Shown piece after piece: positions 3,123-61,577 of a DNA stretch of 64,000 bases. Both the position numbers and the translations under genes were made by a program. The stretch's first letter is position 1. Each line of letters begins with the position of its first letter. The notes below the pieces were generated by a model that saw only the letters and a program-made list of their open reading frames with translations, made no database searches and had not been told where the DNA came from. The stretch is taken from positions 263,500,001 through 263,564,000 of the forward strand of contig CM075977.1 in assembly GCA_038087875.1 (NCBI GenBank). The letters run 5' to 3'. The DNA is from Malacoraja senta. Taxonomy: Eukaryota.

Positions 3123-4077
3123 TCAATCAATCAATCAATCAAGCACTTTATTCATCCCCAAGGGGCAATTTAAAAGGGCGCATTACAGTAGCTTTAATAA
3201 AAGAAAGAAGGGACACAAACAACGTAACGAAAGACAAACATTCAAAGCTACTCTTTGCACCGACCGGTCGACCGCACGAGCAGTGACCCGGCAAGGATTG
3301 GGTTGTCAGCAGCGATACAATAATAAAGAACACACAAAATGTAACACAAACATCCACCACAGCATTCATCACTATGGTGGAAGGCACAAAAATTTGGCCA
3401 GTCCTCCTCCATTTCCCCCCGTGGACAGGACCAGAGTCCAAGTCAGTCCAGGATCGGCTCTTCCTCACCGGAGACCGCGGCTTTAGATTGTTGTAGGCCG
3501 CAGGCCGGCGGTCAAGATTTAAAGTCCCCGCCGCAGCCAGAAGCACCGTAGACTGCAGGGCCGGCGATCGAAGCTCCCCTCCAGGGGTGATGGTAAGTCC
3601 ATGCCGGCCCCGCGGTAGAAGGTAGCCGCGGGCCGGCAATGATGGCTTCTTCTTCCCCCGGGTCCCCCACGAGGGATCCCGGGCTGTAGACGCCGCACCA
3701 GCTGGAGCTCTGCAGACCGCGGCTTCAGGCTGCGACTTCAGGCTGCCGGCTGCCCCGGGCCAGCGAAATGGAGCGCTCCCCTCCAGCGAGGGTTCACCCG
3801 CTCCACGCCGAGAGTCCACGCTGAAGCCCCGGGCACGTCTCCGGGAAAGGCTGCGCCGATCCTTGATGTTAGGCCACGGGGGAGGCGACCTGGAAAAGTC
3901 GCCTCTCCATGGAGGAGGCGACCGAAGCGGTTTCCCCCACACCCCCCCCCCCACACCACCCCCCACACAAGACACCCAAAGAAACATTAAACACACACTT
4001 TAAAACATACTAAAAAATAAAAACAAGTTGAAAAAACTGACGCACTGCTGACATGGCTGCTGCCTAAACAGCGCCCC
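3123..4077 (-). mobile_element. Modular GC-rich non-autonomous retroelement, copy A
   Basis: GGCGC head, T-rich tract, G-run, GC-rich body, CCACCATAG..CTGTGGTGG hairpin, AATAAA plus (GATT)n tail. Same layout as 8 other copies in the window. Confidence 0.7.
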
Positions 4078-7596: not shown

Positions 7597-8489
7597 CTAC
7601 ACTAAGTGGGACCCCTTGGGTCCCTTTCACACAGGATGCCTGGTCCCCCATCGCAACCTGTTCCCCCAACGCAATATTGCACCACTCACCCATAGCCCCC
7701 AACTGCGCAGGCGCGGCTCATTTCCCCTCATCTCCAGCACTCTCTCCCCTTCCTCTTCACCCTCCCTCTTCTTTCCCCTCTCCTCCCCTCCCCTCCCCAA
7801 TCCCTCCCTCACCTATCCCTCCCTCTCCTTTCCCCTACCCTCAGTCACGCCCTCCCTCCATCCATAACTCCTCTCCCCTCCCTACCCCCATCCTATCACT
7901 CTACCCCCCACTCCTCACCTCCCCCTATCCCTCACCTCCCCCACTGCCCTCCTCTCCCTCTATTCCCCACTCCCTACATTCACCACTCCCCCTCTCCTCT
8001 CCCTCTATTCCCCCTCCTCCCACACTCTCCCTCCTCACCTCCCCAGGATCTCGAGGTTGCCGCTCCTTTCCCATCTTGCATGCCCCAAAGGAGCATCAGC
8101 CGTCGGCGCCCTCAGAGCCAGGCTCAGCACCCAGGCCTCGGATTCTCGGCGCAGATCCGGAGCACCAGCAGCTACGGCCACGCGCTGACAGAGCCGGGCG
8201 GGTGCAGTTGACTGACAGCGGACGTGGCCAATCAGTGCGGCGATAGTGCAGGAAGGGGCGTCGCTGTCCCGGCGGTGACTGACAGGAGAGGAGACTAATC
8301 TGCGCATGCGCGGTTTTAAAGATTTTTAAACCTTTATCACTTTTTAAATATACCACCGATCGGAACAAAACTTGTTGCACTTGAAGCACAGGAGAATAGT
8401 GAGTAAGGTGGGGGAAAAACCGTAGTGCTATCGTGTACCGTTTTTGTGCAAATTTAAAAAACAAGGTGAGAGTTTTAGTTCTATATAGA
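7597..8489 (-). mobile_element. Non-autonomous Helitron
   Basis: 5' TC at 8489-8488; 3' hairpin GGGACCC-AAG-GGGTCCC upstream of GTAG (variant of CTAG); inserted between A and T. Confidence 0.7.
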
Positions 8490-9453
8490 TAAATACAGCC
8501 TTGAATAATTAAAGGACTTGCTCAGGAGAGACTAAATTGTTTGTCGTGTCCGGGATCCAGTATTCAGGACCAGTTACTATGTGAGATTGAGTTGTATCCG
8601 TAGAAGTGCAAACAGACATGCAAAGCCGAGAGCTATCCAAAGCCAAACTGGAAATGTACAAAAACAAATAAAACTGCAGTTGTTGGACCCTGAAACAAAA
8701 ACAGAAATGTTGGAAGAACCCAGCCAGCCAGCCAAGCATTACCAGTGAAAAGAGAAACCAGTTAATGCTTCACATTGTAGACTTTTCATCCGAACTACTG
8801 GAGAGCTAAGACAAGTACAAGTGTGTCAGAGCAAGGACACAACAGCCAATGTGTTCAAGTATTGTGGACACCAACATGAGTGACCAAGAATGAAATGGCC
8901 TCCATAAGGGGAAAACTTATTTTGTGGCCTGGATTGGGAAATCGTTTTTGCAGCCAATGTTTACAATAAAGAGGACATTGAAAGCCACTGGGGTGGGCAG
9001 AATAAGCTATGCAGAGATGGGGACAGAATTAGAGTAAGAGCACCAGTTGAGGCTGAACATATCATGTCAAGATGTTGGTGCAATCATAGTTAGTGGCACC
9101 AGCTTGATTTGGTATCAATGTGTCATGTGTCACTGAAGCAAACAGTCAATGGCAAGGCGGTAATGTTGATGTGCGCGAAATGTCCTTGGCTAGCTTATGC
9201 AATATTGAGTGTTATCCACTTTGGAATTGTGACCTTCATTGTGCATTTGCATTGAACTGTTAAGGTTAGTTTTGAACAGAGTGAAATCAGCTTATTGCCC
9301 TGGAAGACAGGTCATGGAATGCTCTGTCCCTCTCTAAGTTAATTTGTGTAATAAAGTATTTTGTTAACTTACCTTTTGTCCTCCATTATCTTTGGGAAAG
9401 AATTAAAGAGGGATACTGGGTAGCACATATTGCTTCGTATTCATAATCATTAT

Positions 9454-9578
9454 GGTGTGGGAGATTGCAACATTCACGTGTTTTGACGAATGCAATCAAC
9501 CTGGCGTGCACAATCAAATAAAATCAAATAGAACAAGTTGTCCTACAACTTTAGGCTGTGCACACCACACGCAAGAAG
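9454..9578 (+). mobile_element. Short (AAG)n-tailed retroposon with internally deleted HDV-like ribozyme head (family 2)
   Basis: 11-bp near-TSD ATAAT(C/T)ATTAT at 9443-9453 and 9579-9589; homologous to 31166-31305 on the opposite strand. Confidence 0.75.
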
Positions 9579-10659
9579 ATAATTATTATCATAATACCTG
9601 TGTTTCCAAAAAGAAGAGGTAAAGACTAATCCGTATTTATAATGTGTCAGAAAATTTGATATTGTCTAAGTTTAAGTTGTGATTATCGCATAAATTCCAT
9701 GAATTGATCTAAATAAAACTATATTTCTATCTCCCATTGAAAATAGCCCAAAGATCATTGGGATCTGCATCTGCATGCAGAGCAGATGTCTGTTAACCCA
9801 TTGCTCAGATCTTTCTCTGTCCTTCCACCGATGCTACCTGATTTTCTGAGGAATTTTTGTTTTCTGTTTTTCAGCTTTCCAGCATATACAGTATTTTATT
9901 TTTGCTTCTTGTACAGTTTGACAGTATATAGGAAATTAATAAAGTTTTGATTTATTACACTCAAGAAATAATTAATAATATCCTGTCAGAACTCATTGGA
10001 GATTGAAGCCATCTATTCTAAATGATGAAATGAGCTTTGCTTATTTCTTTGATGTCAGATGTATTTGGCTTCGCTTGATGTTTGTACTTTTGATTTGTGG
10101 TCACTGATCAAAGATAACTGGGCTGGGTTGTGAGTGGGAAAGAGGAATCGAGATGTAGCAAACAGTGCAAATGCCATAAACATCAGCATGAGTTAATAAT
10201 TTCAAATCCAGGTTAAACAAGGACACAGTACCCATCGCAGTTTTTTAAAAAAATGCTTCGGTAGAAGAATTGGTTGTACTCTGGAACTAAAAATGAATCC
10301 CAATATCTAAATTAAAACATATTATGATCTGATTATATTATTTATCCTCTGTTGCTTGGAAGTCGTAATGTAAGACAAACATAGTGAGCTAGAACATTAT
10401 ATAGGGGCCAAATGCATTGAAGTTCAAATGCAAATTAGTTAATGTTTGTGCACATTTTCTGTCACCCCTTTACACAAAGTAGCTAATCATATCCAACTGG
10501 TTCAAGCCACTGACACAAGAAATGATCCCTGTACAAATGTAAGTGGAGTCAATATCCCTGCTTTCTTACCATGACATTTAGCCTGGACCCTATTGTATGG
10601 AGCTTCTCTTTAGGAATTCAATTCTTAAGAGCTCACTTTAAAAGTAACCCCAGAAACAC

Positions 10660-13545: not shown

Positions 13546-16276
13546 TTGATCATTATTATCTACAATTGAATCCCAAGGATTTTTAATTTCATCTGAGCAA
13601 ATGGTCCAATGATCCAAATGCCAAGGAAATTTTCTTTATTTGTAAAGACTTTGCATGTCCATCGATGTAACAAAATTATGCATAGACTTTGAATGATCTT
13701 TATCTGTGCAGCACAGACAAAAGACCAAGCCAAATATCTGTGCATAAGTTCACTGAAGTGATGGTCATAGTGCTCATTTGTCTAAGTGGTTATGTACGTA
13801 GGGAATCTTCAGGCTATAAGAACTGGATTTTATCATTGTGAGCCAGCAGCTCCGGTAGTTGGTCAGAAAGAAGATAGACTGAAAATAGTGGAGAATTGGG
13901 ATGTCACCACTGATTTCTGAATTCAACATTAGTGCATCGACCTAAGTATGAGCCGATCCTCAGGAGAGGTGAATTGGTAATTTCAATGCATTAACAGCTT
14001 CTTAAGAATGACATTAACATTCACATTGAGCTTTATGCACAGGCTTCTCGGGTTTCCTGGTACTTACCATGAAATCAAGGCTGGAACACAGTGGAATTGA
14101 AAGGGAAATCTGCCAATAAGTAGAGCTACTACACAACTGCTTCCTCCGGTGAATCTGTGAAAATAAAAACGTAACTCACAGAACCCATGATTTGTGATGG
14201 AAGCTAAATCTGAAAACTTTGGAACTGACATTTAAAAAGTTGGACCTGAATTTGAAAAGCTTACTATTGAATGTTCAAACATTGCAAATGACTGCTCGTG
14301 AACTGCACTTTGCAGTTCCCAAAGGCCACCTCAGCATATCTGATTTTATACTACACAATACTTTGGCGCTCAGGGGTGGTTGATGATAAACATCAGCAAG
14401 AGCCTCAGGAGCAGTAGGGACTGCTCTCCACATATTTCCAGATGCACAGGAATGAAGAAATCAGCAGAGAAGTGCAGGAGACCAAGCACGCCACACAGTC
14501 AGATAATGTTTCCAGTCAGATAAAGTGGCTCCGAAGGCTGGAAGTATTGGGCCAGTTTGCACCAGTGGCTCGTGGATGCTTCCATCGGGAATCACAGGCC
14601 AGCTGCAATGCATGTGTTACCACATTCCAGATTTCTGGACTTGCTTAGAGCAGGGCGGTATACAGAATACCTTTGGGTTCAAATGAAGCAATTAACCGCC
14701 GGCTTTGGAGTAGTTGCCTTTATTTTAGCCAACGTTAGAAATAAATGCACTTCTTGAATCAAAATTCTAATTTATTTAATTATTTTTGACCGTTTCTAAA
14801 TGTCTCTGATCATTGGAGACATATAAAGACAGTGCAAAGGCTTGTTGAAAGCACAAGCTCTCAGAAGGCTGTCAGGACGATCCCAGCAACGATCCTCAGT
14901 TTGTATCACATCCTGGTTAGTCACTATTTGCAGATGGTGTCTGGGATTAGGTGACCCCAGTTTTACCCCATCAGAGACATCTCAGTCAGTCTACGTATCT
15001 TACATTCTGTTTTCCCCCTCCACAAACCAAGTTTTATCTCTCCAAGCATTGGAGTCATTTCAGTCAGTTGAAGGAAGAAGAAACAATGAAGACAAAGGAA
15101 TGCCCTCACTTGCTTATAAACTTGCATCCACCAGCTCCTGTACTAACCCTTGAGACGATATCAGAGAGACACGATCTGGAAAATATAAGGAAACAGGGCA
15201 GAGGGCAAGGATAATGCAGATGGCAAGTTATCAGAGAACACTGTCACATAATGGTTTATATTCCAAAGATTAAGGTGAGGGCTTTGATTAGTTAAGTCAA
15301 AATAATGCTGACAAGTGTAAATAACCAAAAGCTTGTGTCATTGCATATCCTCCACTCAATTATATTGAGCATGGAGGTATCTAGATGAGCTTGGCAAAGG
15401 ATTCAGAGCAGAGCTTGTTCCTTGTGCTTTCAAACATGAAATGTAGCGATATTACAAAACCTACCATCAGCGGCGCTCCAGATCTGCCACGAGCTGTGTG
15501 TGCGACTCCGGAGCCTTTGAGGGGGGGGGGGGGGCAGGATTACAATGCAGGTTTGTATTGCTTGTCGGAGAGGGATTTCCTCGGGCTGCTAGCTGATGAA
15601 GAAAAATCGATCGGACTTCCGTTCCCGTTTTTTTTTTAAATCGCTGGATAATTTAATCGCTGGATTAAAGTAAAAAGCGACTTCTAACGCCCTCAACGCC
15701 TTCAACGTCACGGATCTCAATATCAGGACAAAACAAAAGGTATATCGTTTATTTCACATATAATCTTGCTTCTTCGGGTGGCTTTAGTCTAATCTTATGA
15801 TGCGAAAATGTTATTTAGGCCCCATACGAATCGGCCATGTCTTGCCTGCCGATATGGGCTTAAAATTTACGGCAACGGCAATGTTCCAATCGATCACATT
15901 CCAGAAACACCCATTCTCAAGATGATTAAAATCCTCATTTTTTTTACACAATCATGTCATAAGAACATCTAAATCATCTATATTTTGTGTTATTGTCTAT
16001 CCATGATCAATATTTTTATACTAAATATCCACAACAGTTTTAGTCACATGTATTGTGCAACAAATAATAATTTTGATTATATTGAGAGTGGATGTTTCTG
16101 GATTAATTTATGGGAATTAAACATTAAATTCCTTCCATTTGGCATACAAGTTCATGACAGTGAGATTTAAAAATCATGTTCTATTGTGAATTCTTGTGTC
16201 AATGGGATCAGTTTGTTATTTGGATACTTAGGCTATTTAAATTTTTTAACCTTTTCTTAAGAAATGGATAGATGTT

Positions 16277-16468
16277 CTTCTTCTTTTCGTGTCCATCTTG
16301 TTTCAAATGTTGGCCTCGCTGTCATCGTCCGTCCTGAAAAGGACGCAAGTTTCCGGTGACAATCAGTGGAAGCCATCACTTGTCGCAATAGATGATGGTG
16401 GCAGCAGAATTCGCTCAGGATACTTCCAGTTTCCAGCCCCGCGACGTGGACGCTCCTGCTATGGGGCC
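16277..16468 (-). mobile_element. Short retroposon (192 bp) with HDV-like ribozyme head and Ingi/Vingi-like GGACACGAAAAGAAGAAG tail (family 1)
   Basis: Exact 10-bp TSD GATAGATGTT at 16267-16276 and 16469-16478; (AAG)n tail. Confidence 0.85.
16402..16468 (-). ncRNA. HDV-like (CPEB3-type) self-cleaving ribozyme
   Basis: GGCCCC A UAGCAGGA GCG UCCACGU CGC GGGGCU GG AAACUGGAAGUAUCCUGAG CGAA UUCUGCUG: P1, P2, P3, P1.1, P4 and J4/2 with catalytic C (16413) all present. Confidence 0.85.
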
Positions 16469-16686
16469 GATAGATGTTTAGATCTAGTAATTGAATTTAG
16501 ATTAATTTAATTGATTAGATGAATTTAATTGATTTGACGAAACTGATGAATATGAATTTTTTGTTGGGCATTTACTATTTGTTTTAGCGTTTAACTTTAG
16601 CATTTCTACCTTTTATCTAAAACTGCAAATAATAACTTGTTTCTGTTAATGCTGTTCAGTGTTTTTTTCCTTTACATTTTAAACAG

Positions 16687-18648: not shown

Positions 18649-19734
18649 GTTTTATATTTGTTTCCGAATGCTTCAATCTATAATAACTGAAAATTACATT
18701 CAGTTATCTTAATTTTTAAGAAAGTTATGGGCTTTTGACTGTCAATGGATCACAGCTTTTGTGTTAAGTCAATAGAAAAGCAATAGGGAACAAGATGCTA
18801 ATTTCCGAGTATGAAAATGGCCATAACTTTTTTAATACTGAAGATATGAAAGTGAATTATGTATTAAATTAAAGTTCTTTTTATGCTTTATCTGATGGGA
18901 TAAATTACAGGCTTGATTTTTTAAATCTCAACATTTTGTAACATTCCTATGAAATGGTTGTTCATTCCAATGACACACATATGGATTCTACCATGGTGGA
19001 GTGTCAGATGGTTGTTATTATAACTTCCTTTGGTGCAGAAGCACCTTTCATCAAATGTCTGAATTATGCAGTAGAAGCTTGGAGAGCTGTCATTATGACT
19101 CAAGATACCACTTTTTAAAGGAATCCATTGGAGTCAACTCATAAGTTTGCAAACAAACCTGTTAACTTGCAGTCCTGGAATCTCATGTCATCGTTCTCAA
19201 ATCCTTCCATGCCCAGGAATTCTTTTGGTCATCCTCCTGGGTTATGTGGAGTTTACCAATTAGGAGATCAGCTTCCTTTTACTCCCTTGCGGGAGAAGGT
19301 GGAGATGCTTGAAGTGGGGGAAAACATATTAGGCAACCAAGAGAATTGTCAGGGAGTTGAGTTTACTTTTGAATGTGTAACATTGTGATTGCATTCAGAA
19401 AATTGGATTGGAACTGAGGTCCTTCCTCAGCATGTTGGTAGTTTCCTCAACAACAGATGGCTTTTGTTGTACAGCTCACAGGTTTCACTGCCTACATTCC
19501 TCATGGAATTACATCTCTTCTGATGTTTCTCCTTTAATTTCTGTGTAGTCAGAGGGAGGAAACTTCATGATTAATGATAGAATAAAAGTATGGAATGTGG
19601 GACCGTTGATGAATGGACAGGACAGATATGGTTCGGATTACTGTTACCCGAACTTTGCCTTCTTTATCGTCAACTTAACCTGCAAATTAACCTTTTGGGA
19701 ATCCTGCACTAGCACTGACCATGTTTTGGATAAT

Positions 19735-22700
19735 ATGATAAAGATAATTGTTCAAAGCAGAAACCTCGTATTTGAAGGAGATAAGATAAACATATTTAGA
19801 GATTATCCTGTGGAAGTTGCCAAGAAGAGAGCGCTGTTTACAGAAACAAGAAGAATACTTAAGAATATAAACAATTTGAGATATGGACTGTTATACCCTG
19901 CAACATTAAGAGTAACCTACGAGCGGAAGGAACATTTCTTCATCAAGCACACAGAAGCACTTGAATTCGCCCAGAGCATCGTGAATAAGTCCGAAGATTG
20001 AATAATACCCTACACCCAACATTCACCTGAAGATATCGGACATTGTTACCCTGCAGAGAAGAAATGGAACTTTAAACTATTATACTTAAGAACTGTCCAA
20101 AATCTGCAATATGAATTGGGCAATTAGATTGCTACTGATATATAATATTTACATTTTAGTACTAATTTCTAACAACTATTACTAATTATGAATACTAATC
20201 AATACTAATTATTGTTAACTGGATCAACTCTGAATTAATTAATAGTATGAAATTTAAGTATAGTCTGATTCAGGTAATTTATTAATAAAAATTTAGGAAG
20301 TTTTTTCTTTGATATTTTTGATTTTACTCTTTAACAATGTTTTTTTTAAAAAATTTTGGCAACTAACATTTTAATTTGAGACTAATAATTATTTCAATTA
20401 TGGAATATAGCTATTGTTTCCCTCCCCCCCATAAATTGTTTTCATTGTAATTGAAACTTTCCTTTTAAGGAAAGTACGGAGCTAGTAATATATATATTTT
20501 TTTACCAAAAGCTACGGAAGTCCTTAGATGCTTAGCCACACTAGGGTGGCTATCACTAACTGCACTAACTATGGTTGTAGTTTTCTTCTTTTTCTACTCT
20601 TTACACGTTATTAATACAACTTCTTTTTATCTTTTTTATCTTATGTTATATTATATTTTGTATTTGGAATGGAATTATATATTTTCTTTAGGGAGATATG
20701 TCCGGATGGTAAACCGACGGGACCTAAAATTCATCTACCTGATGTTTGGGTATAAGGTGGGGTTTGGTGTGCTGAGCCATCTGCTCTAACATAGACCACT
20801 TTAATCACAAGATGCAAGACGTTAATAGGAAAATTGGGGGTGAAGGAATTAAATTATGTAGTTGGAATGTTAAGGGAATTAATGAACCAATCAAGAGAGG
20901 TAAAGTATTAGCTCATTTAAAATCACTTAAAGCAGATATAATATTTCTCCAGGAAACACATCTTAAAAAGGAAGCACAACATAGATTGAAAACAAAATGG
21001 ATTGCTAAAGCGTATCACTCTTCATTCTCACACAAATCTAGAGGGGTTGCAATATTAATTCGTAAAGGTATACCCTTTAAACATATATCAACGATAGAAG
21101 ATATTGAAGGCAGATATATTGTATTAGTAGGGGAGTTATATTCAAAAAAAGTGACTCTCCTTAATGTGTATGGACCTCATTTTGATAGCCCCCTGTTTTT
21201 TAAGAGAATACTTAACACTATCCCAGAATGTACACAACATAACTTAATTATCGGTGGAGACTTAAATTGTACACTGGATGCTTATTTGGATAGATCATCA
21301 ACTCAAAGAAAATCAAAATCTCAGTCAAGTGAATTTCTAAATTGATATATTAATACTACCAACATTAAGGATGTTTGGAGAATTGAAAATCCATCTGGTC
21401 GAGAATACTCATTTTACCAGTGTATAAAACTTACTCAAGGATAGACTACTTCTTAGTAGACTCTAAACTTATCCCATTTACCTATAACTCGCAATATCAT
21501 AATATTATAATATCAGACCATGCTCCACTAACATTTATGATTAAACTAAATGGAATGACCGAGACACAGTCACAATGGAGACTTAACCCCCAAATCTTAA
21601 AAGAAAAACTATGTAATGAATATCTCGTAAAACAGATTAATATGTGTTTTGAGGCTAATGATAGCCCTGGAATCTCTGCCTCCCTTCTTTGGGAAACATT
21701 TAAAGCATTTGTGCGAGGAGCACTAATCTCTTCGCAATCATTTCTTAATAAAGAGAATAGGGCCAAACAACAGACTTTGGAAATGGAAATAAGGCAATTA
21801 GACATAGAAAATGCAATAGCACCATCTATGGCAAAACACAATAAAATTGCAGTACTGAAATATGTTAAACAAGATATACTCAGACCACTATATAAAACTA
21901 TATCAACATACAAAACAATTAAACTTTGAATTTGGTGATAAACCACAAAAACTATTAGCGCGTCAACTTCATAAACTGGACGGGGAAAAAACAATTTACA
22001 AAATTAGATCAGACAAGGGAGAAATATTAACACTGCCTAAAGATATTAATGATAGATTTTTACAATACTATCAAAAACTGTACTCATCTAAAATGACAGA
22101 ACAATCAGCAGGAATGGAAACATTTCTACAGAAATGTAACCTTACAGGTTTAGATCAGAAAGAGAGAGAATCACTAGATGCAGAAATTATGGTAAAAGAC
22201 ATCGAAGAGTCAATTAGATCTTTAAAAAACGGAAAGGCCTCAGGTCCTGATGGTCTAAGCTATGAATTTTATAAAAATTTTACGATCTGATTTCTCCACG
22301 CCTACAGACACTATACAAATACGTTTATACTCAACAGAAACTCCCAGAAACTCTAAATGAATCTACAATCATACTTATACCAAAAATGGATAAGGATCCT
22401 GAAGACCCAGGTTCATATAGAGCAATAGCTCTCTTAAATACTGATCAAAAAATATTAACCAAAATCCTATCTCATAGATTGAGCTTAGTGATTAACAAAT
22501 TAATACACCCTGACCAAACTGGTTTTATTCCAAAACGTTACTCATTTTATAATTTGAGAAGACTATTCAATATTATATATGCAAATAGAATTCCTAATGC
22601 AGATCTAGCAATTATATCGTTAGATGCTGAAAAAGCATTTGACCAGGTAGAATGGTCATATTTATTTTCGGTAATGGAAACATTTCAACTAGGAGAGAAG

Positions 22701-24927
22701 TACTGTACATGGATTAAACTGTTATACTCCAATCCAACAGCTAGAATATTAACAAACCAAATGTTATCAGCTAAATTTAATCTTTCTAGAGGTTGCAGAC
22801 AAGGATGTTCACTATCCCCACTATTATTTGCTCTTGCAATTGAACCATTAGCAGAAAGCGTTAGAACCCATCCAAGAATACACGGGTACAACACTAGAGA
22901 TACAAGGAATAAAATTTCCTTATATGCAGATGATGTACTAATATATATCACAAAGTTAGAAACTAGTATTCCAAATCTATTAAATCTAATAACTCAATTT
23001 GGTCAGTTCTCAGGATATAGAATTAACTGGAATAAAAGTGAAATCATGCCAATAACAAAATTCAATTTAAATACAATGCAACAATCCCCTTTTAAAATAG
23101 TTAAAGATAAACTTAAATATTTAGGAATCTATGTAACTAAGACATATACCTCTTTATTTAAACTAAATTTTCCACCTTTACTTAATAAATTACACAAGAA
23201 TATTCAGTACTGGAAAACAATTCCCATTTCAATGCTTGGTAGAATTAATGCTATAAAAATGATCTTCTTACCGCAACTACTGTACCTATTTCAATTAATT
23301 CCGATATATATCCCCAAAAACTTTTTCAAAAAAGTAGACTCCATTGTTACAAGCTTTATTTGGGATTATAAGAATCATAGAATAAGTAAAAAACATTTAT
23401 GTAAGTCAAAGAGCAACGGAGGTTTGCCTTTACCAAATTTCTTATTTTAATTTTGGGCAGTCCATATTAAAAACATGAATTTCTGGCTGGAAGAAATGGA
23501 TCAATATCCAGATTGGTTAAGGAAGGAAAAGGAAGACTGTTTACCTTTTGAAATTGGTTCGATTATATTTGCTCCCACAAAATTGCATACAAAAACCTAT
23601 AAGGAAAACCCTATAATACATAGTGGAATACGAATTTGGAAACAATTTAAAAAAGCTTTAAAACTGAATAATATACCACTATGTCTTCCCATTGTAAATA
23701 ATCCTTTATTCAAGCCATCCATATTGGATAGAGGTTTTATACAATGGAAAAATTATGGAATTAAAAAGATTGGACATCTTTATAGGGAAGGCATCTTTCT
23801 GTCATTTCAAGAGTTACAACAGAATTATGGACTACACTCAAATAATTTTTTCAGATATCTACAAATTAGAGATTATGTTAAATCTAATGCACAAGTATAT
23901 AGGACTAGGGAACCAGAAATTCTTGATGAATGTTTGAATAAGCATCCTAACACTGAAAAATTAATAGCATATTTATAACATCCTCTTAAACAATGAGGTA
24001 CCACCGATGGAACTATATAGACACACATGGGAAAATGAGTTAGGTTATCCTATTACGAAAGATATTTGGGACGAAAGTTTACAACATATACATCAATGCT
24101 CGTTAAATGCCAGACATGCTTTAATACAATTTAAAGTCTTACACAGATTACATTACTCCAAAATAAAACTAAATAGAATCTTTCCCACATATTTCTCCTA
24201 TCTGTGATAAATGCTTACATCTAGAGGCCAATTAACACATACTTTTGCAAATTGTATAAAAATCAAAAATTTCTGGATTGATATTTTTGAAATAATTTCT
24301 GAAGTTGTTAATACAAAATTGGATCCAGACTCAAAATTATAATACTTGGGATATCAGAACAAATTTAATACTCACAACAAGCCAAAGAAACTTCCTTGAC
24401 TACAGTATAATAACTGGGAAAAAATTAATATTACAATTTTGGAAAGGTCTATAACCCCCACAATTAAAATGTGGGATTGTGGAAATGTCAGAGACCCTAC
24501 ATCTAGAAAGATTAGACTTGTCTTAATGGACAAACAAGAACTTTTTGTTAAAATATGGGCTCCATTCATTAACTATTTGAAGGGATATCTGGGCCCAGCA
24601 CGAAAGCCCAACTGAAGCTTGAACTCAGGATTAGATGTAATTATATTTCATAACCTACGAACTTATCTCCAATGACGTATTATAAGTAACTCATTCCACC
24701 TCTTTTTTTGTTTTTTTCTCGATATTTGTAATGCTTTCTTCTTTTTACCTCTCTTTTTCTATCTATATTAAAAAAAACACTAGAAGCAGAATTAATTGAC
24801 AATTGACAATTTTAATAAAATATGATTGATGTATATGAAAAGTTTTCTTTTCTATTATAATATGTTACTATACTTTTATAATATGTTTGCTTCTAATAAA
24901 AATATTAATCAAAAAAAAAAAAAAAAA
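19735..24927 (+). mobile_element. L1-clade LINE, 5'-truncated, ORF2 disrupted
   Basis: ORF1 C-terminus (IFRDYP..RYGLLYPATLRVTY); APE (SWNVKGIN, LQETHL, GGDLN, SRIDY, SDH); RT (LDAEKAFD, RQGCSLSP, LYADDVL); CCHC remnant; AATAAA and poly(A) at 24911-24927. Confidence 0.95.
20812..24616 (+). pseudogene. L1 ORF2 (APE-RT-CCHC) broken by stops and frameshifts
   Basis: Collinear fragments 20812-21345, 21420-21929, 21862-22290, 22386-23450, 23475-23978, 24007-24207. Confidence 0.9.
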
Positions 24928-27535: not shown

Positions 27536-28943
27536 TTTGGGAAGTGGCGGCGCTGTTAATCGGCTGCGGCTCGCCTGCAGTCCGTCTGTTATTACTTTTT
27601 CTGTTGGTTTTTTTTGTCCTGTTTTGTTAAGTTTTAGTTTGTTGGGTTGTGTTAGGGGGAGAGAAACATGTCCTCTGTCTCCTCCTTCGGGGAATGCGAC
27701 TTTTTCGTGTCGTATCCCCCTTCCCTGCCTCCGTCTGCGGTGAGGCCTAATGGCGGAGCTGGCCGCCTCCATCCTGCGACCGATCCCGAGGCTACGGAGG
27801 CAGAGCCAGCCAGGACTTACCAGCGGGATGCTGGCCGTCTTCGGGGCTGAGGCAGTGGTGGCCCGACTTGCTGGTGCGGCGTTCTGGCTTTCGGCGGCGG
27901 CCTGGAGCTGATGCAGCGGGGTCCGGAGCAGAGACTGCGGGACCTGGAGCTGATGCAGTGGGGTCCGGAGCAGAGACTGCGGGACCTGGAGCTGATGCAG
28001 TGGGGTCCGGAGCAGAGACTGCGGGACCTGGAGCTGATGCAGTGGGGTCCGGAGCAGAGACTGCGGGACCTGGAGCTGATGCAGCGGGGTCCGGAGCAGA
28101 GACTGCGGACCTGGAGCTGATGCAGCGGGGTCCGGAGCGGAGACTGCGGGACCTGGAGCTGATGCAGCGGGGTCCGGAGCAGAGACTGCGGGGACCTGGA
28201 GCTGATGCAGCGGGGTCCGGAGCAGAGACTGCGGGACCTGGAGCTGGGGCGGTGGTCCGGAGCGGAGACTGCGGGACCTGGAGCTGATGCAGCGGGGTCC
28301 GGAGCAGAGACTGCGGGACCTGGAGCTGATGCAGCGGGGTCCGGAGCGGAGACTGCGGGACCTGGAGCTGGTGCGGGTCCGGAGCAGAGACTGCGGGGCC
28401 TGGAGCTGATGCAGCGGGGTCCGGAGCGGAGACTGTGGGACCTGGAGCTGGGGCGGTGGCCCGGAGCGGAGACTGTGGGACCTGGAGCTGGTGCGGGGTC
28501 CGGAGCAGAGACTGCGGGGCCTGGAGCTGATGCAGCGGGGTCCGGAGCAGAGACTGCGGGACCTGGAGCTGATGCAGCGGGGACCGGAGCGGAGACTGCG
28601 GGACCCGGGGCTGATGCTGTGGCGGGCCGTCTCGGAGCGGAGACGGCGTTCCAGCTTTCGGCGGCAGCGACATCACCACGGAGGTCCGCTGGACTGGAGG
28701 GCGGCATCTTCCGCCTGGATCGATCGCCTCAGCGCAGAGGGAGAACAAGGAGGGAAGAGACGGAGACTAAGACTTTGCCTCCATCACAGTGAGGATGTGC
28801 TTGGTGAACTCACTGTGGTGGATGTTTAATTTGTGTTTATTTGTATGTTTTGTTATTATTGGTTCTGTGTATGACTGCAGGCATCACAATTTCGTTCAGA
28901 CGAAAGGTCTGAATGACAATAAAGGAAACTTGAACTTGATTCT
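27536..28943 (+). mobile_element. Modular retroelement, copy D, expanded by an internal minisatellite
   Basis: 6-bp TSD TGATCA at 27530-27535 and 28944-28949; hairpin at 28780-28822; ATGACAATAAA tail. Confidence 0.75.
27901..28645 (+). repeat. GC-rich 42-bp minisatellite, about 17-18 units
   Basis: Unit CCTGGAGCTGATGCAGCGGGGTCCGGAGCAGAGACTGCGGGA, with shorter variants. Confidence 0.95.
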
Positions 28944-31165: not shown

Positions 31166-31305
31166 TTCCTTCTTCTTGCATATGGCGTGCACAGCCTAAA
31201 GTTGTTGGACAACTTGTTCTATTTGATTCTTATTTGATTGTGCAGGCTGGGTTGATTGCATTCGTCAAAACAGGGCGACCACGTGAAGGTTGCAATCTTC
31301 CACCC
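31166..31305 (-). mobile_element. Short (AAG)n-tailed retroposon with minimal HDV-like ribozyme head (family 2)
   Basis: Inserted in a Rex-type fragment with AACCTT duplicated on both sides; tail GCCATATGCAAGAAGAAG; homologous to 9454-9578. Confidence 0.78.
31254..31305 (-). ncRNA. Minimal HDV-like ribozyme (near-absent P4; P1 degenerate in this copy)
   Basis: GGGUGG AA GAUUGCA ACC UUCACGU GGU CGCCCU GU UUUGA CGAA UGCAAUC. Confidence 0.7.
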
Positions 31306-45629: not shown

Positions 45630-46935
45630 CTGAATGGATGAATGAATATGTTTATTGGCCAAGTATGTACACATACAAGGAATATGCCTTGGTGCTCTGC
45701 TCGCAAGTAACAACACATAATGACACATAAAACATTAAACATTAATAATAAAACATTATAGTTTAAACATGTGAATGAAATAAAATATCAGAGCAAAAGA
45801 AGGCTACAGACTTTTGGTTATTGAGTAGAGCTACTGCTCGTGGAAAAACGCTGTTTTTATGTCTGGCTGTGGCGGCTTTGACAGTCCGGAGTCGCCTTCC
45901 AGAGGGAAGTGCTTCAAAGAGTTTGTGGCCAAGGTGAGAGGGGTCAGAGATGATCTTACCCACTCGCTTCCTGGCCCTTGCAGTGTACAGTTCATCAATG
46001 GGGGGAATGTTGCAGCTAACAACCTTCTCAGCTGATCAGACGATTCACTGCAGCCTCCGGATGTCGTGCTTGGTGGCTGAGCCAAACCAGACCATGATGG
46101 AGAAGGTGAGAACAGACTCTACGATGGCCGTGTAGAATTCGACCATCATTGCCTGTGGCAGATTGTGCTTCCTCAGCTGCCGCAGGAAGTACATCCTCTG
46201 TTGGGCCTTTTTGACTGTGGAGTCGATGGTGGCCCCCCATTTAAGGTTCCTGGAGATGATGGTTCCCAGGAACTTAAAAGACTCCACAGATGTGACTGTG
46301 GTGTTGTTAATGGTGAGTGGGGGGAGGGGAGGGGGAGCTCTCCTAATGTCTACAATCAGTTCCACTGTCTTAAGAGCATTGAGCACCAGGTTGTTACGAA
46401 GGCACCAGGGCGCCAGTTGTGTCACTTCCTGTCTGCAGGCAGATTCCTCCACATCCTGGATCAGTTCAATCAGGGTTGTGTCGTCCGCAAACTTGAGAAG
46501 CTTGACAGAGGTGTCTGTGGAGGTGCAGTCGTTGGTGTAGAGAGAGTAGAGTAGAGGAGAGAGTATGCAGCCTTGTGGTTCTCCTATGCTGAGTGTCTGT
46601 GGGTCCAAGATGTGGTTTCCCATCCTAACACGCTGCTTCCTGTCTGTCAGGAAGTTGGTGATCCACTGACAAAGGGGTTCTGACACAGTCAACTGGGAGA
46701 GTTTGGAGTGTGGTAGCTCTGGCACAATGGTGTTGAATGCAGAGCTAAAATCAACAAACAAAATCCTTGCATAGGTCCCCTGGATCTTACCCACTCGCTT
46801 CCTGGCCCTTGCAGTGTACAGTTCATCAATGGGGGGAAGGTTGCTGGAGGATGAAGTGCAGGCCTAGGTTGACTGCGTCATCCACTGATCTGCAAGCTGC
46901 AGAGGGTCCAGCAGAGGGTTTGTGATATTTTTGAT
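45630..46935 (-). mobile_element. Rex1/Babar-type LINE RT, 5'-truncated
   Basis: FVDFSSAFNTI, PQGCILSPLLYSLYTND, KFADDTT, KKAQQRMYFLRQL; (ATTC)n tail. Confidence 0.9.
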
Positions 46936-54361: not shown

Positions 54362-55322
54362 AAAATCAGCACGGGAGCATCAAGGCTGCGTGCTCAGCCA
54401 CGTGCTGTACTCACTCTATACTCATGACTGTGTAGCTGGACATAGTGCGAACTCCATCATCAAGTTCGCCGACGACACCACTGTTGTGGGACGAATCATT
54501 GATGGTGACGAGTCAGAGTATAGAAGTGAGATCGACCGATTGACCAAATGCTGCCAGCACAATAACCTGGCTCTCAACACCAGCAAAACCGAGGAACTAA
54601 TTGTGGACTTTGGAAGGGGTAGGATAGGGACCCACAATCCCGTTTATATCAACGGGACGAGGGTGGAAAGGGTCAAGAACTTAAAATTCCTGGGCTTGCA
54701 TATTTCCGAAGGTCTTTCCTGGTCCGAGCAAACTGATGCAATTATAAAGAAAGCACATCAGTGCCTCTACTTCCTGAGAAGATTACGGAGAGTTGGTATG
54801 TCAAAGAGGACTCTCTCGAACTTCTACAGGTGCACAGTAGAGAGCATGCTGACTGGTTGCATCGTGGCTTGGTTCGGCAACTTGAGCGTCCAGGAGCGGA
54901 AAAGAATGCAGAAAGTTGTGACCACTGCCCAGTCCATCATCGGCTCTGACCTCCCCACCATCGAAGCGATCTATCGCAGTCGCTGCCTCAAAAAGGCTGC
55001 CAACATCATCACGGACCCACACCATCCTGGCCACACACTCATCTCTCCGCTGCCATCAGGTAGAAGGTACGGGAGCCTGAAATCTGGTACATCCAGGTTC
55101 AGGAACAGCTACTTCCCCACAGCCATCAGGCTATTAAACACGTCATCAAACAAACTGAACTGAGCCTATTGCACTTTATCTGTTTATTTATGTGTGTATA
55201 TATAGTCTAAGCTATGTAGACACACTGAATGTTCTGTATTTATGCTTACAATACTCTGTGCTCAGCAAGCAAGAATTTCATTGTCATATCTGGGACACAT
55301 GACAATAAACTCTCTTGACTCT
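54362..55322 (+). mobile_element. Rex1/Babar-type LINE 3' end
   Basis: LYSLYTHDC..KFADDTT..KKAHQCLYFLRRL..LPSGRRY; ATGACAATAAA tail. Confidence 0.9.
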
Positions 55323-60113: not shown

Positions 60114-60650
60114 TCACTTATATGGTGCATGACTTGGCCACTCAAGAATTGACTGCTTTTTAGCTATGAAAAACTCCTTTGTTGCTTTAGCAGTATGTTT
60201 GGGATCATTGTCTAGCTGTAGAATGAACTGTCGGCCAATGAGTTTTGAGGCATTTGTTTGAACTTGAGCAGATAGGATGTGTCTATACATTTCAGCATTC
60301 ATTATGCTACTACCATCAGCAGATGTATCATCATTGAAGATAAGTGAGCCAGTACCTTCAGCAGCCATACATGCCCAGGCCATAACACCCCCACCGCCGT
60401 GTTTCACAGATGATGTGGTATGCTTTGGATCTTGGGCAGTTCCTTCTCTCCTCCATACTTTGCCCTTGCCATCACTCTGATATAATTTAATCTTCATCTC
60501 ATCTGTCCACAACACTTTTTTCCAGAACTGTGGTTGCTCTTTTAAGAACTTCTTGCAAACTGTAACCCGGCCATCCTATTTTTGCGGCTCACCCGTGGTT
60601 TGCATCTTGCAGTGTAGTCTCTGTATTTCTGTTCATGAAGTCTTCTCAGG
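60114..60650 (-). mobile_element. Tc1 transposase remnant (further pieces at about 61578-61623 and 63665-63800)
   Basis: LWTDE..VKHGGGGVMAWACM..QLDNDPKHTAK..LEWPS, Tc1 DDE motifs. Confidence 0.9.
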
Positions 60651-60667
60651 AAGGCATTTCATAAGTC

Positions 60668-61577
60668 TTCCCTCCTCTACTCCCTCTTCACCTACGACTG
60701 CACCACCTGTACATGGTACTAACACCATCATCAAGTATGCAGATGATACAACGGTGATTGGCCTCATCAGCAACAACGATGAGTCGGCCTATAGGGAGGA
60801 GGTCCAGCTCCTAGCAGCATGGTGCGCTTACAACAACCTGGCCCTTAACTCCAAGAAGACCAAGGAGCTCATTGTAGACTTCAGGAAGTCTAGGGGCGGC
60901 ACACACACCCCCATCCACATTAACGGGACGGAGGTGGAACGTGTTTCCAGCTTCAGGTTCCTGGGGGTCAACATCTCCAATGACTTCTCTTGGACCCACA
61001 ATACCTCAACTCTGGTCAAGAAGGCTCACCAGCGTCTCTTCTTCCTGAGGAGACTAAAGAAGGTCCATCTGTCTCCTCAGATTCTGGTGAACTGGTCTGC
61101 ACCATCGAGAGCATCCTTACCAACTGCATCACAGTATAGTATGGCAACTGCTCTGTCTCCGACCGGAAAGCACTGCAGAGGGTGGTGAAAATTGCCCAAC
61201 GCATCACCGGTTCCTCACTCCCCTCCATTCAGTCTGTCCAAAACAAGCGTTGTCTGCGAAGGGCGCTCAGCATCGCCAAGGACTGCTCTCACCCCAACCA
61301 CAGACTGTTTACCCTCCTACCATCCGGGAGGCGCTACAGGTCTCTCCGTTGTCGGACCAGCAGGTCCAGGAACAGCTTCTTCCCTGCGGCTGTTACACTA
61401 CTCAACACTGTACCTCGGTGACTGCCAATCACCCCCCCCCCCCGGACACTCCTCCCACCAGGATTTATTTATTGCTCATATTTATGTCGCTCTTCTAGGG
61501 AGATGCTAACTGCATTTCGTTGTCTCTACTGTACACTGCACAATGACAATAAAGTTGAATCTGATCTGAATCTGAAT
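60668..61577 (+). mobile_element. Rex1/Babar-type LINE 3' end inserted in Tc1
   Basis: IIKYADDTT..KTKELIVDFRK..KKAHQRLFFLRRL; (TCTGAA)n tail. Confidence 0.9.

Follow-up and report, generated by a model that had tools for sequence, protein, structure and literature searches.

The 64,000-nucleotide stretch of the skate Malacoraja senta analyzed here (GCA_038087875.1, contig CM075977.1, positions 263,500,001 to 263,564,000; hereafter called the window and numbered from its first letter) carries on its minus strand a 192-bp insert that is one old copy of a high-copy, non-autonomous retroposon of the class without long terminal repeats (non-LTR). The head of the insert has the fold of a hepatitis delta virus (HDV)-like ribozyme, and comparisons of letters and helices indicate that the ribozyme lineage to which it belongs, which also heads long interspersed nuclear elements (LINEs) of other species, is homologous to the mammalian CPEB3 ribozyme. 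We consider it probable, with good confidence, that the insert is a ribozyme-headed retroposon copied through the known cycle of self-cleavage followed by the action of LINE enzymes. An HDV-like ribozyme at the 5′ end is already an established arrangement in non-LTR retrotransposons and their short derivatives, and the mechanism is not new. What is new, as judged from sequence, is the kinship of retroposon and LINE heads with CPEB3, of which these are the first relatives outside mammals.

On the minus strand (16468 to 16402), the 67-nt ribozyme has the sequence GGCCCCAUAGCAGGAGCGUCCACGUCGCGGGGCUGGAAACUGGAAGUAUCCUGAGCGAAUUCUGCUG. All 19 pairs of helices P1, P2, P3 and P1.1 form in this 67-mer (script check), whereas none of 200,000 shuffled sequences formed all of them, the best reaching 17. 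The Rfam model of the CPEB3 ribozyme (RF00622, gathering score of 35 bits) matched the window end to end at 16403-16480 on the minus strand, with 39.6 bits and an E value of 4.2e-07 for the whole window; no other Rfam ribozyme family matched in the window, even at E values up to 10. Our own covariance model, R1 (see below), gave the window ribozyme 69.3 bits. The sequence-only reading of this DNA had proposed a complete HDV/CPEB3-type fold, to be checked by a search with Rfam models, and both the pairing and the above-cutoff match to the CPEB3 model bear it out. The following structural hallmarks of HDV-like ribozymes are present: a P1 within the 6- to 7-bp range that starts from the cleavage-site G with a G-U wobble, a 3-bp P3 that continues directly into the 3′ strand of P1, a P2 pseudoknot that closes the fold, a P1.1 between L3 and J1/4, and a putative catalytic C that opens J4/2 in the form C-N-A-A. 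Both CGAA and CUAA occur as J4/2 in this family, and we take them to be the genomic and antigenomic HDV forms, respectively.

Features of the 192-bp insert and of its ribozyme head (window coordinates)
Feature	Position	Strand	Remarks and basis
Non-autonomous retroposon, 192 bp	16277..16468	-	Ribozyme head, ~80-nt body and LINE-type 3′ end; target-site duplication, empty sites, other copies
HDV-like ribozyme, CPEB3 type	16402..16468	-	67 nt; Rfam RF00622, model R1 and helix pairing; predicted cleavage 5′ of G at 16468
P1 5′ strand GGCCCC	16463..16468	-	6/6 pairs with 16435-16440 GGGGCU; G1-U34 wobble (script check)
P1 3′ strand GGGGCU	16435..16440	-	Script check of pairing
P2 5′ strand UAGCAGGA	16454..16461	-	8/8 P2 pairs; family majority A at 16455, giving AGCAGAA as in CPEB3
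P2 3′ strand UUCUGCUG	16402..16409	-	Family majority has final A at 16402
P3 GCG (16451-16453), L3 UCCACGU (16444-16450), P3′ CGC (16441-16443)	16441..16453	-	P3 3/3 pairs
P1.1	C20, C21 = 16448-16449; G35, G36 = 16433-16434	-	2/2 pairs, C20-G36 and C21-G35 (script check)
P4, short: CUGGA-AGUA-UCCUG	16416..16429	-	Single U-U mismatch; Rfam alignment and script check
J4/2 CGAA	16410..16413	-	Putative catalytic C = C56 at 16413; family majority CUAA
Target-site duplication beside element 5′ end	16469..16478	.	AACATCTATC on minus strand; perfect 10 bp; 10 letters fit both sides of empty-site joint
Target-site duplication beside element 3′ end	16267..16276	.	AACATCTATC again; perfect 10-bp repeat; empty-site joint
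3′ end GACACGAAAAGAAGAAG	16277..16293	-	Conserved GACACGAA motif, then (AAG)n microsatellite; motif and microsatellite likewise end related LINEs

To characterize the family, DNA contigs from runs X27 and X1, which represent two related species, and RNA reads of one species (X29) were aligned to 16200-16550. Thousands of contigs match this segment, with 82% to over 99% likeness. Similarity stops exactly at 16468 in 193 contigs of X27, 195 of X1 and 14 of X24, and the sequence beyond is unrelated (agreement of 0.36 to 0.42); a further 30 and 43 contigs stop at 16469, approximately as expected if one flank base matches by chance. The ribozyme's first base, G1, is the first base inside the upstream copy of the target-site duplication (TSD) of the insert. 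This is where the sequence-only reading had placed it, next to a perfect 10-bp TSD, and element 5′ ends elsewhere would have spoken against that reading; instead, about 195 contigs per species end at this base, which is the 5′ boundary of the family as a whole. In 55 RNA reads and in DNA contigs, position 16266 is joined to 16469; 202 bp, the length of the element and one TSD, are skipped and 10 letters fit on either side, which indicates an empty site with a single TSD copy. Such evidence is available because the host repeat has many insert-free copies: the element is nested in another high-copy repeat (16200-16276 and 16469-16500), of which insert-free paralogues are present in DNA contigs and RNA reads. 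Other copies of the element itself cover 16275-16279 to 16467-16470 with 20 to 28 differences; within the 64-kb window, BLAST of the element found no second copy.

The window copy differs from the family majority at about 8 of 192 sites, three of which lie in the ribozyme. At position 14 it has G for the majority A, so that an A-U pair of P2 becomes G-U; at position 57 it has G for U, which changes J4/2 from CUAA to CGAA; and at position 67 it has G for A, which turns a U-A pair of P2 into U-G. The letters first read are therefore correct for this copy but do not represent the majority at these three positions, and the majority A at position 14 gives a family P2 strand of AGCAGAA, identical to that of CPEB3. 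No A or B box of RNA polymerase III (Pol III) was found in the element, even with loose patterns, and ARAGORN found no tRNA in it, as the sequence-only reading had stated for the boxes. Its label of short interspersed nuclear element (SINE) is a loose one and does not hold in the strict sense; because the insert has no Pol III head, it is better named a bipartite non-autonomous LINE derivative.

Autonomous LINEs with the same head and 3′-terminal motif, for which a search had been proposed, were found in other species. The exact 20-mer AGCAGRAGCGTCCACGTCGC occurs at 11 loci in public metagenome contigs. Six of these are high-GC bacterial chance matches without a ribozyme, and the remaining five represent two loci (A and B) of one eukaryote. 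The heads of A and B are exactly 74 nt long and score 55.6 and 63.2 bits with RF00622. They read GGGGGCCAUAGCAGAAGCGUCCACGUCGCGGCCCCUG...GCUAAUUCUGCUA and combine the P1 of CPEB3 with the L3 of the window element and the J4/2 of the window family; their P3/L3 block has the same letters as that of the window element, one position off the CPEB3 consensus. About 200 nt downstream of these heads, a single, slightly decayed frame encodes an APE endonuclease and a reverse transcriptase (RT). Copy A is complete on a longer contig (L014), where it extends over 3162 bp from G1 to the tail ...UUUAGAGACACGAAUCAUC, with GAGACACGAATCATC as its end, and is bracketed by a 14-bp TSD, ATCATCCGAGTCTT. An extra G lies between this TSD and the predicted G1 (L014 2978, equivalent to L002 2198) and could represent untemplated addition at the 5′ junction. 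Related copies from another assembly (L017 and L018) are 5′-truncated and end in ...TTTAGAGACACGAA(AT)n, with the tail GAGACACGAA(AT)n. The LINE tails thus consist of GACACGAA followed by (ATC)n or (AT)n. The window element, which terminates in ...CAACATTTGAAACAAGATGGACACGAAAAGAAGAAG, has in common with them GACACGAA plus a microsatellite and an upstream block, CAACAT.TGAAACAA; the overall alignment score of the tails is not above that of shuffles.

The APE segment led to annotated relatives in the teleost Aldrovandia affinis, the named relatives being “hypothetical protein” entries from fishes. An A. affinis element (GCA_029706075.1, L021) starts at 3175 with a 68-nt ribozyme, GGGGAUC A UGGUAGAA GCG UUCACAU CGC GAUCCCU ... 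CGAA UUCUACCA, which matches all 78 positions of the mammalian CPEB3 model without a gap (70.8 bits) and matches no other Rfam HDV-like family. This element, a deleted LINE of 1990 bp, stays collinear with the LINE across the APE domain and a portion of the RT. It ends in GAAAUGAAAAGAAGAAGAAG, with GAAAAGAAGAAGAAG as its 3′ terminus; the tail is (AAG)n, matching that of the window element, and the 11-bp TSD of the Aldrovandia copy, ATAGAAAAGTT, abuts G1 exactly. The head of the window element is thus homologous to the first 68 to 74 nt of APE- and RT-encoding LINEs in other species, as is expected of a bipartite derivative; non-autonomous LINEs of bipartite make-up have been described for RTE, Ingi, Vingi and R2 (PMC5786205).

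R1, the covariance model built from the four heads (those of the window element, of metagenome loci A and B, and of the Aldrovandia element), picks up a decayed head upstream of a related LINE (L020) and, with 20.8 bits, a divergent head in a second Aldrovandia LINE (L023, JAINUG010000690.1, 3903-3968). The latter lies about 35 nt upstream of its APE open reading frame (ORF) and has P3 GCC/GGC, an HDV-like L3 (UCCUCGU), J4/2 CCAA and P2 UGCAGAA/UUCUGCA; P1 is imperfect in this copy. An intact relative (P0006) encodes 984 amino acids on a 3148-bp contig (L012, Logan SRR24146882) and contains APE and RVT_1 only, with no RNase H. Positions 1-100 of this transcript-like contig, which starts one base before a P1-like GGGGGUG...UGCCCCU, also contain a P2-like GCUGAU/GUCAGC; no full HDV fold or Rfam match was assigned in the L012 head, and its 5′ end may be a diverged ribozyme head. 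No ribozyme was found in P0001 (GCA_027704905.1, L013), and L022 and L024 gave no match. The viral contig collection contained no matches, and the genome contig collection contained five bacterial contigs with bare matches of 19 to 21 nt and no ribozyme. ORFs flanking the metagenome LINEs had no Pfam match, one of 301 amino acids belonging to another LINE, and no repeats common to the metagenome LINE contigs and the window were found. On L017 (ENA ERZ25067582), two hammerhead-like motifs were noted some 2 kb downstream of the truncated LINE, at 7974-8051 (−) and 8522-8566 (+). Both score below their cutoffs (HH9, 34.2 bits with a cutoff of 52; type I, 32.3 bits with a cutoff of 34), and they may belong to a Penelope-like element or retrozyme of that host.

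Covariation, another check proposed at the outset, was examined in an alignment of the four heads. All 71 cells of P1, P2 and P3 hold standard pairs, and both partners have changed in five pairs, of which three belong to P1 and two to P2; this number was reached in 1 of 500 shuffles, and slid controls gave 0 to 2. Two of the three P1 changes are G-C to C-G swaps between the P1 of the window element and that of CPEB3 type, and the P1 and P2 of Aldrovandia contribute G-C to A-U and C-G to U-A swaps. Conservation among the relatives is lowest in P4. Covariation over four sequences provides modest evidence, of the exactly compensating kind, and the changes in P1 and P2 suggest that the fold has been preserved, rather than the sequence alone.

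In the cycle that we favor, a source copy read through within any longer transcript would fold its ribozyme during transcription, and the ribozyme would cut 5′ of G1. The released RNA would start at the first base of the element and, since the cut leaves the entire catalytic core downstream, would keep the ribozyme. GACACGAA and the AAG microsatellite would then be recognized by the RT of a compact, single-ORF APE and RT LINE with a head and tail of the same kind, and target-primed reverse transcription would run as far as the RNA's 5′ end and generate a TSD of about 10 bp. The cycle predicts 5′ ends exactly at G1; the skate family and the Aldrovandia element fit this prediction, and LINE copy A fits it to within one base.

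Several observations weigh against this reading. PolyA RNA sequencing reads of a related species (X29) showed no above-threshold accumulation of molecule ends at or near 16468, and 87% of the aligned reads continue into unlike sequence. PolyA libraries are poor detectors of 5′-OH ends, and in vivo cleavage is neither shown nor excluded by these reads; we infer self-cleavage of the window ribozyme. P1 is only 6 bp long and P4 contains a mismatch in the window copy, which also carries the three substitutions at positions 14, 57 and 67, although these break no base pair. The nested minimum-free-energy fold of the 67-mer is no better than that of shuffles (z = 0.52), a result that is uninformative because the fold is a double pseudoknot, which the method cannot represent. 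No partner LINE is present within the window, and LINE heads A and B are known from metagenome contigs alone. Finally, similarity between the body of the element and the LINE 5′ untranslated region (UTR) or 3′ region does not exceed that of shuffles, and only the head and the last ~45 nt correspond.

Some of these points would also suit a head that is retained for another role, as an internal DNA promoter (like Pr77 of L1Tc), a protective 5′ structure or a binding site for a LINE protein, in which case the ribozyme would be weak or inactive. The first 77 nt of L1Tc and NARTc are both promoter and ribozyme (PMC3383444), and the missing pile-up at G+1 in X29, the short P1 and the imperfect P4 are in line with such a role. 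However, the 5′ ends of about 195 contigs per species fall at the predicted cleavage site to the base, as cleavage predicts, P1 and P2 covary, and skate and teleost heads alike retain the putative catalytic C together with the L3 and J4/2 motifs. We regard another role without effective cleavage as unlikely and retain the self-cleavage cycle as the explanation of the insert, although the head might combine cleavage with a promoter or protective function, as Pr77 of L1Tc would suggest.

The relationship to the CPEB3 ribozyme, also put forward in the sequence-only reading, is real in the window copy (39.6 bits) and stronger in the LINE heads (55.6, 63.2 and 70.8 bits). The window ribozyme and RF00622 have the same double-pseudoknot architecture, an identical P3, an A as J1/2 and a near-identical P2 (family majority AGCAGAA/UUCUGCU). 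L3 is UCCACGU in the window and UUCACGU in CPEB3, and the window copy has the same J4/2, CGAA, in contrast to the CUAA of the family majority. The 6-bp P1 of the window (GGCCCC/GGGGCU) differs from that of CPEB3 (GGGGGCC/GGCCCCU) by compensated changes, P1.1 can form two pairs rather than one, and P4 is shorter and unrelated in sequence. The sequence-only reading predicted from the second P1.1 pair a cleavage faster than that of CPEB3, which is so far conjecture. Unlike CPEB3, the window ribozyme is the head of a multi-copy mobile element, in a non-mammal and outside a CPEB3 intron. It is a homologue, rather than an orthologue, of the CPEB3 ribozyme, because it belongs to a multi-copy, TSD-flanked insert in a non-mammal.

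The resemblance to CPEB3 could in principle reflect convergence under structural constraints rather than common descent. Few nucleotides are believed to be invariant among HDV-like ribozymes, which may have had multiple origins (PMC8256844), and the J4/2 and L3 motifs are functionally constrained. However, GCAGAA/UUCUGC in P2, GCG/CGC in P3 and U(U/C)CAC(G/A)U in L3 are held in common, although P2 and P3 letters vary freely in other HDV-like ribozymes. The gap-free, 70.8-bit alignment of the Aldrovandia head to the 78-position model extends over the whole ribozyme, no other Rfam HDV-like family matches, and exact core 20-mers that occur by chance in bacterial genomes never come with the rest of the ribozyme. 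Common descent is preferred, given that the fold does not dictate these letters of P2, P3 and L3 and that the Aldrovandia alignment has no gaps, and we judge convergence to be quite improbable. Given common descent, a retrotransposon origin of the CPEB3 ribozyme would be the simplest reading. We lean toward the more specific proposal that a LINE of this lineage, or a short derivative of one, inserted into the CPEB3 intron in an early mammal and that its 5′ head was domesticated as the CPEB3 ribozyme, for which the fish and skate elements would be the missing outgroups.

Two further explanations of the insert fare worse. That it is a single, dead-on-arrival, internally deleted LINE copy, and not a member of an amplifying family of short elements, is hardly credible: only one copy is present in the window, and internally deleted LINE copies do exist, such as the 1990-bp Aldrovandia element, but other copies span the same 192-bp structure, which means that the deleted form itself was copied many times, and similarity ends at 16468 in about 195 contigs per species. 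A chance match without biological meaning, for which only the short motif length speaks, is effectively refuted for the window ribozyme by the Rfam E value, by the failure of any of the 200,000 shuffles to form all pairs, by the coincidence of the element boundary with G1 across the family, and by homologues that head LINEs in other species.

The CPEB3 ribozyme has been described as mammal-specific, with “a lack of outgroups” (PMC8233481); according to a 2021 paper, it is not known outside mammals, and nothing relevant was found in full-text literature on the CPEB3 ribozyme together with shark, teleost or Vingi. Mobile relatives scoring up to 70.8 bits are now available from a skate retroposon family, a teleost LINE and metagenome LINEs, and the origin of the CPEB3 ribozyme becomes a testable question. 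This ribozyme has been implicated in memory-related regulation of CPEB3. If true, domestication would allow the ancestry of CPEB3, and possibly of other vertebrate HDV-like ribozymes, to be reconstructed. The heads also supply natural variants, with a P1 of 6 or 7 bp, one or two pairs in P1.1, and CGAA or CUAA as J4/2.

Other retroelements of the window were considered as partners of the insert and rejected. At ~19567-24200 (+) lies an L1/Tx1-like LINE, not the partner, that is broken into several frames; it includes an APE domain (20812-21345), an RT (22386-23450) and a frame resembling ORF1. Pieces of CR1/L2-type LINEs, consisting of a GDSL-esterase ORF1-like frame and RT fragments with an ALKBH8_N-like C-terminal motif, lie at 883-1836 (−), 46045-46794 (−), 54390-55163 (+) and 60553-61188 (+), and the RT fragments at 46, 54 and 60 kb were rejected as CR1/L2-like. 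A tandem array of about 0.8 kb (27832-28664) has a period of 21 bp, with a 42-bp higher order, and the long ORFs on both of its strands are probably repeat artifacts.

A second retroposon family, of ~138 nt, is represented in the window by a copy at 31168-31305 (−) and by a damaged copy at ~9459-9585 (+) with a deletion inside the ribozyme. Its head is a 52-nt HDV-like fold without P4, with L3 UUCACGU, J4/2 CGAA and P2 GAUUGCA/UGCAAUC, and its tail is GCAAGAAGAAG. The two families have the same design and the same AAGAAGAAG tail, and the window copy of the 192-bp element also has J4/2 CGAA; they differ in the missing P4 and in the letters of P1, P2 and P3, which are unrelated. Neither Rfam models nor R1 detected the heads of the ~138-nt family, and the head of the 192-bp element is complete, including P4, and it is this head that matches the CPEB3 model.

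Among known systems, short ribozyme-headed derivatives are represented by NARTc and by the R2 SIDEs (PMC3383444, PMC3414825). The elements described here resemble L1Tc and NARTc of Trypanosoma cruzi (L1TcRz, Pr77), an APE-type LINE and its short derivative, both of which begin with an HDV-like ribozyme of ~77 nt, and the L1Tc ribozyme releases element RNA from co-transcripts (PMC3185411, PMC3383444, PMC4035085). However, these elements of a protist are of the Ingi clade and carry RNase H and poly(A) tails, and the ribozyme, for whose DNA promoter activity has been demonstrated in L1Tc, has no sequence similarity to CPEB3. In R2 and its SIDEs, a 5′ HDV-like ribozyme also sets the RNA's 5′ end, and deleted copies keep the head and the 3′ end (PMC3414825, PMC3774820). 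R2 ribozymes resemble that of the window element in a P1 that is typically 6 or 7 bp long (PMC3774820) and in a P4 that is variable or absent. In contrast, R2 has a restriction-like endonuclease and 28S rDNA as its sole target, whereas the window element, which is dispersed, has an AT-rich target and a ~10-bp TSD.

Another parallel is with Vingi, and it is plausible, from the features of the related LINEs, that the partner lineage is Vingi; the sequence-only reading had proposed an RT of Ingi/Vingi type. Those LINEs are compact (3.1 to 3.2 kb), with a single ORF for APE and RT and without RNase H, features that are Vingi-like but not exclusive to Vingi. Vingi elements likewise are compact, have a single APE and RT ORF and lack RNase H (PMC13708176); the likeness extends to a size of ~3.1 kb and to derivatives composed of the 5′ end plus the 3′ end. 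If the lineage is indeed Vingi, the 5′ UTR used in Vingi-based gene-insertion systems (PMC13708176) may hold an unrecognized ribozyme. Positions 2-74 of Vingi-2_Gav are reported to survive inside a SINE (PMC5786205), a segment that matches the 74-nt head of the LINEs described here.

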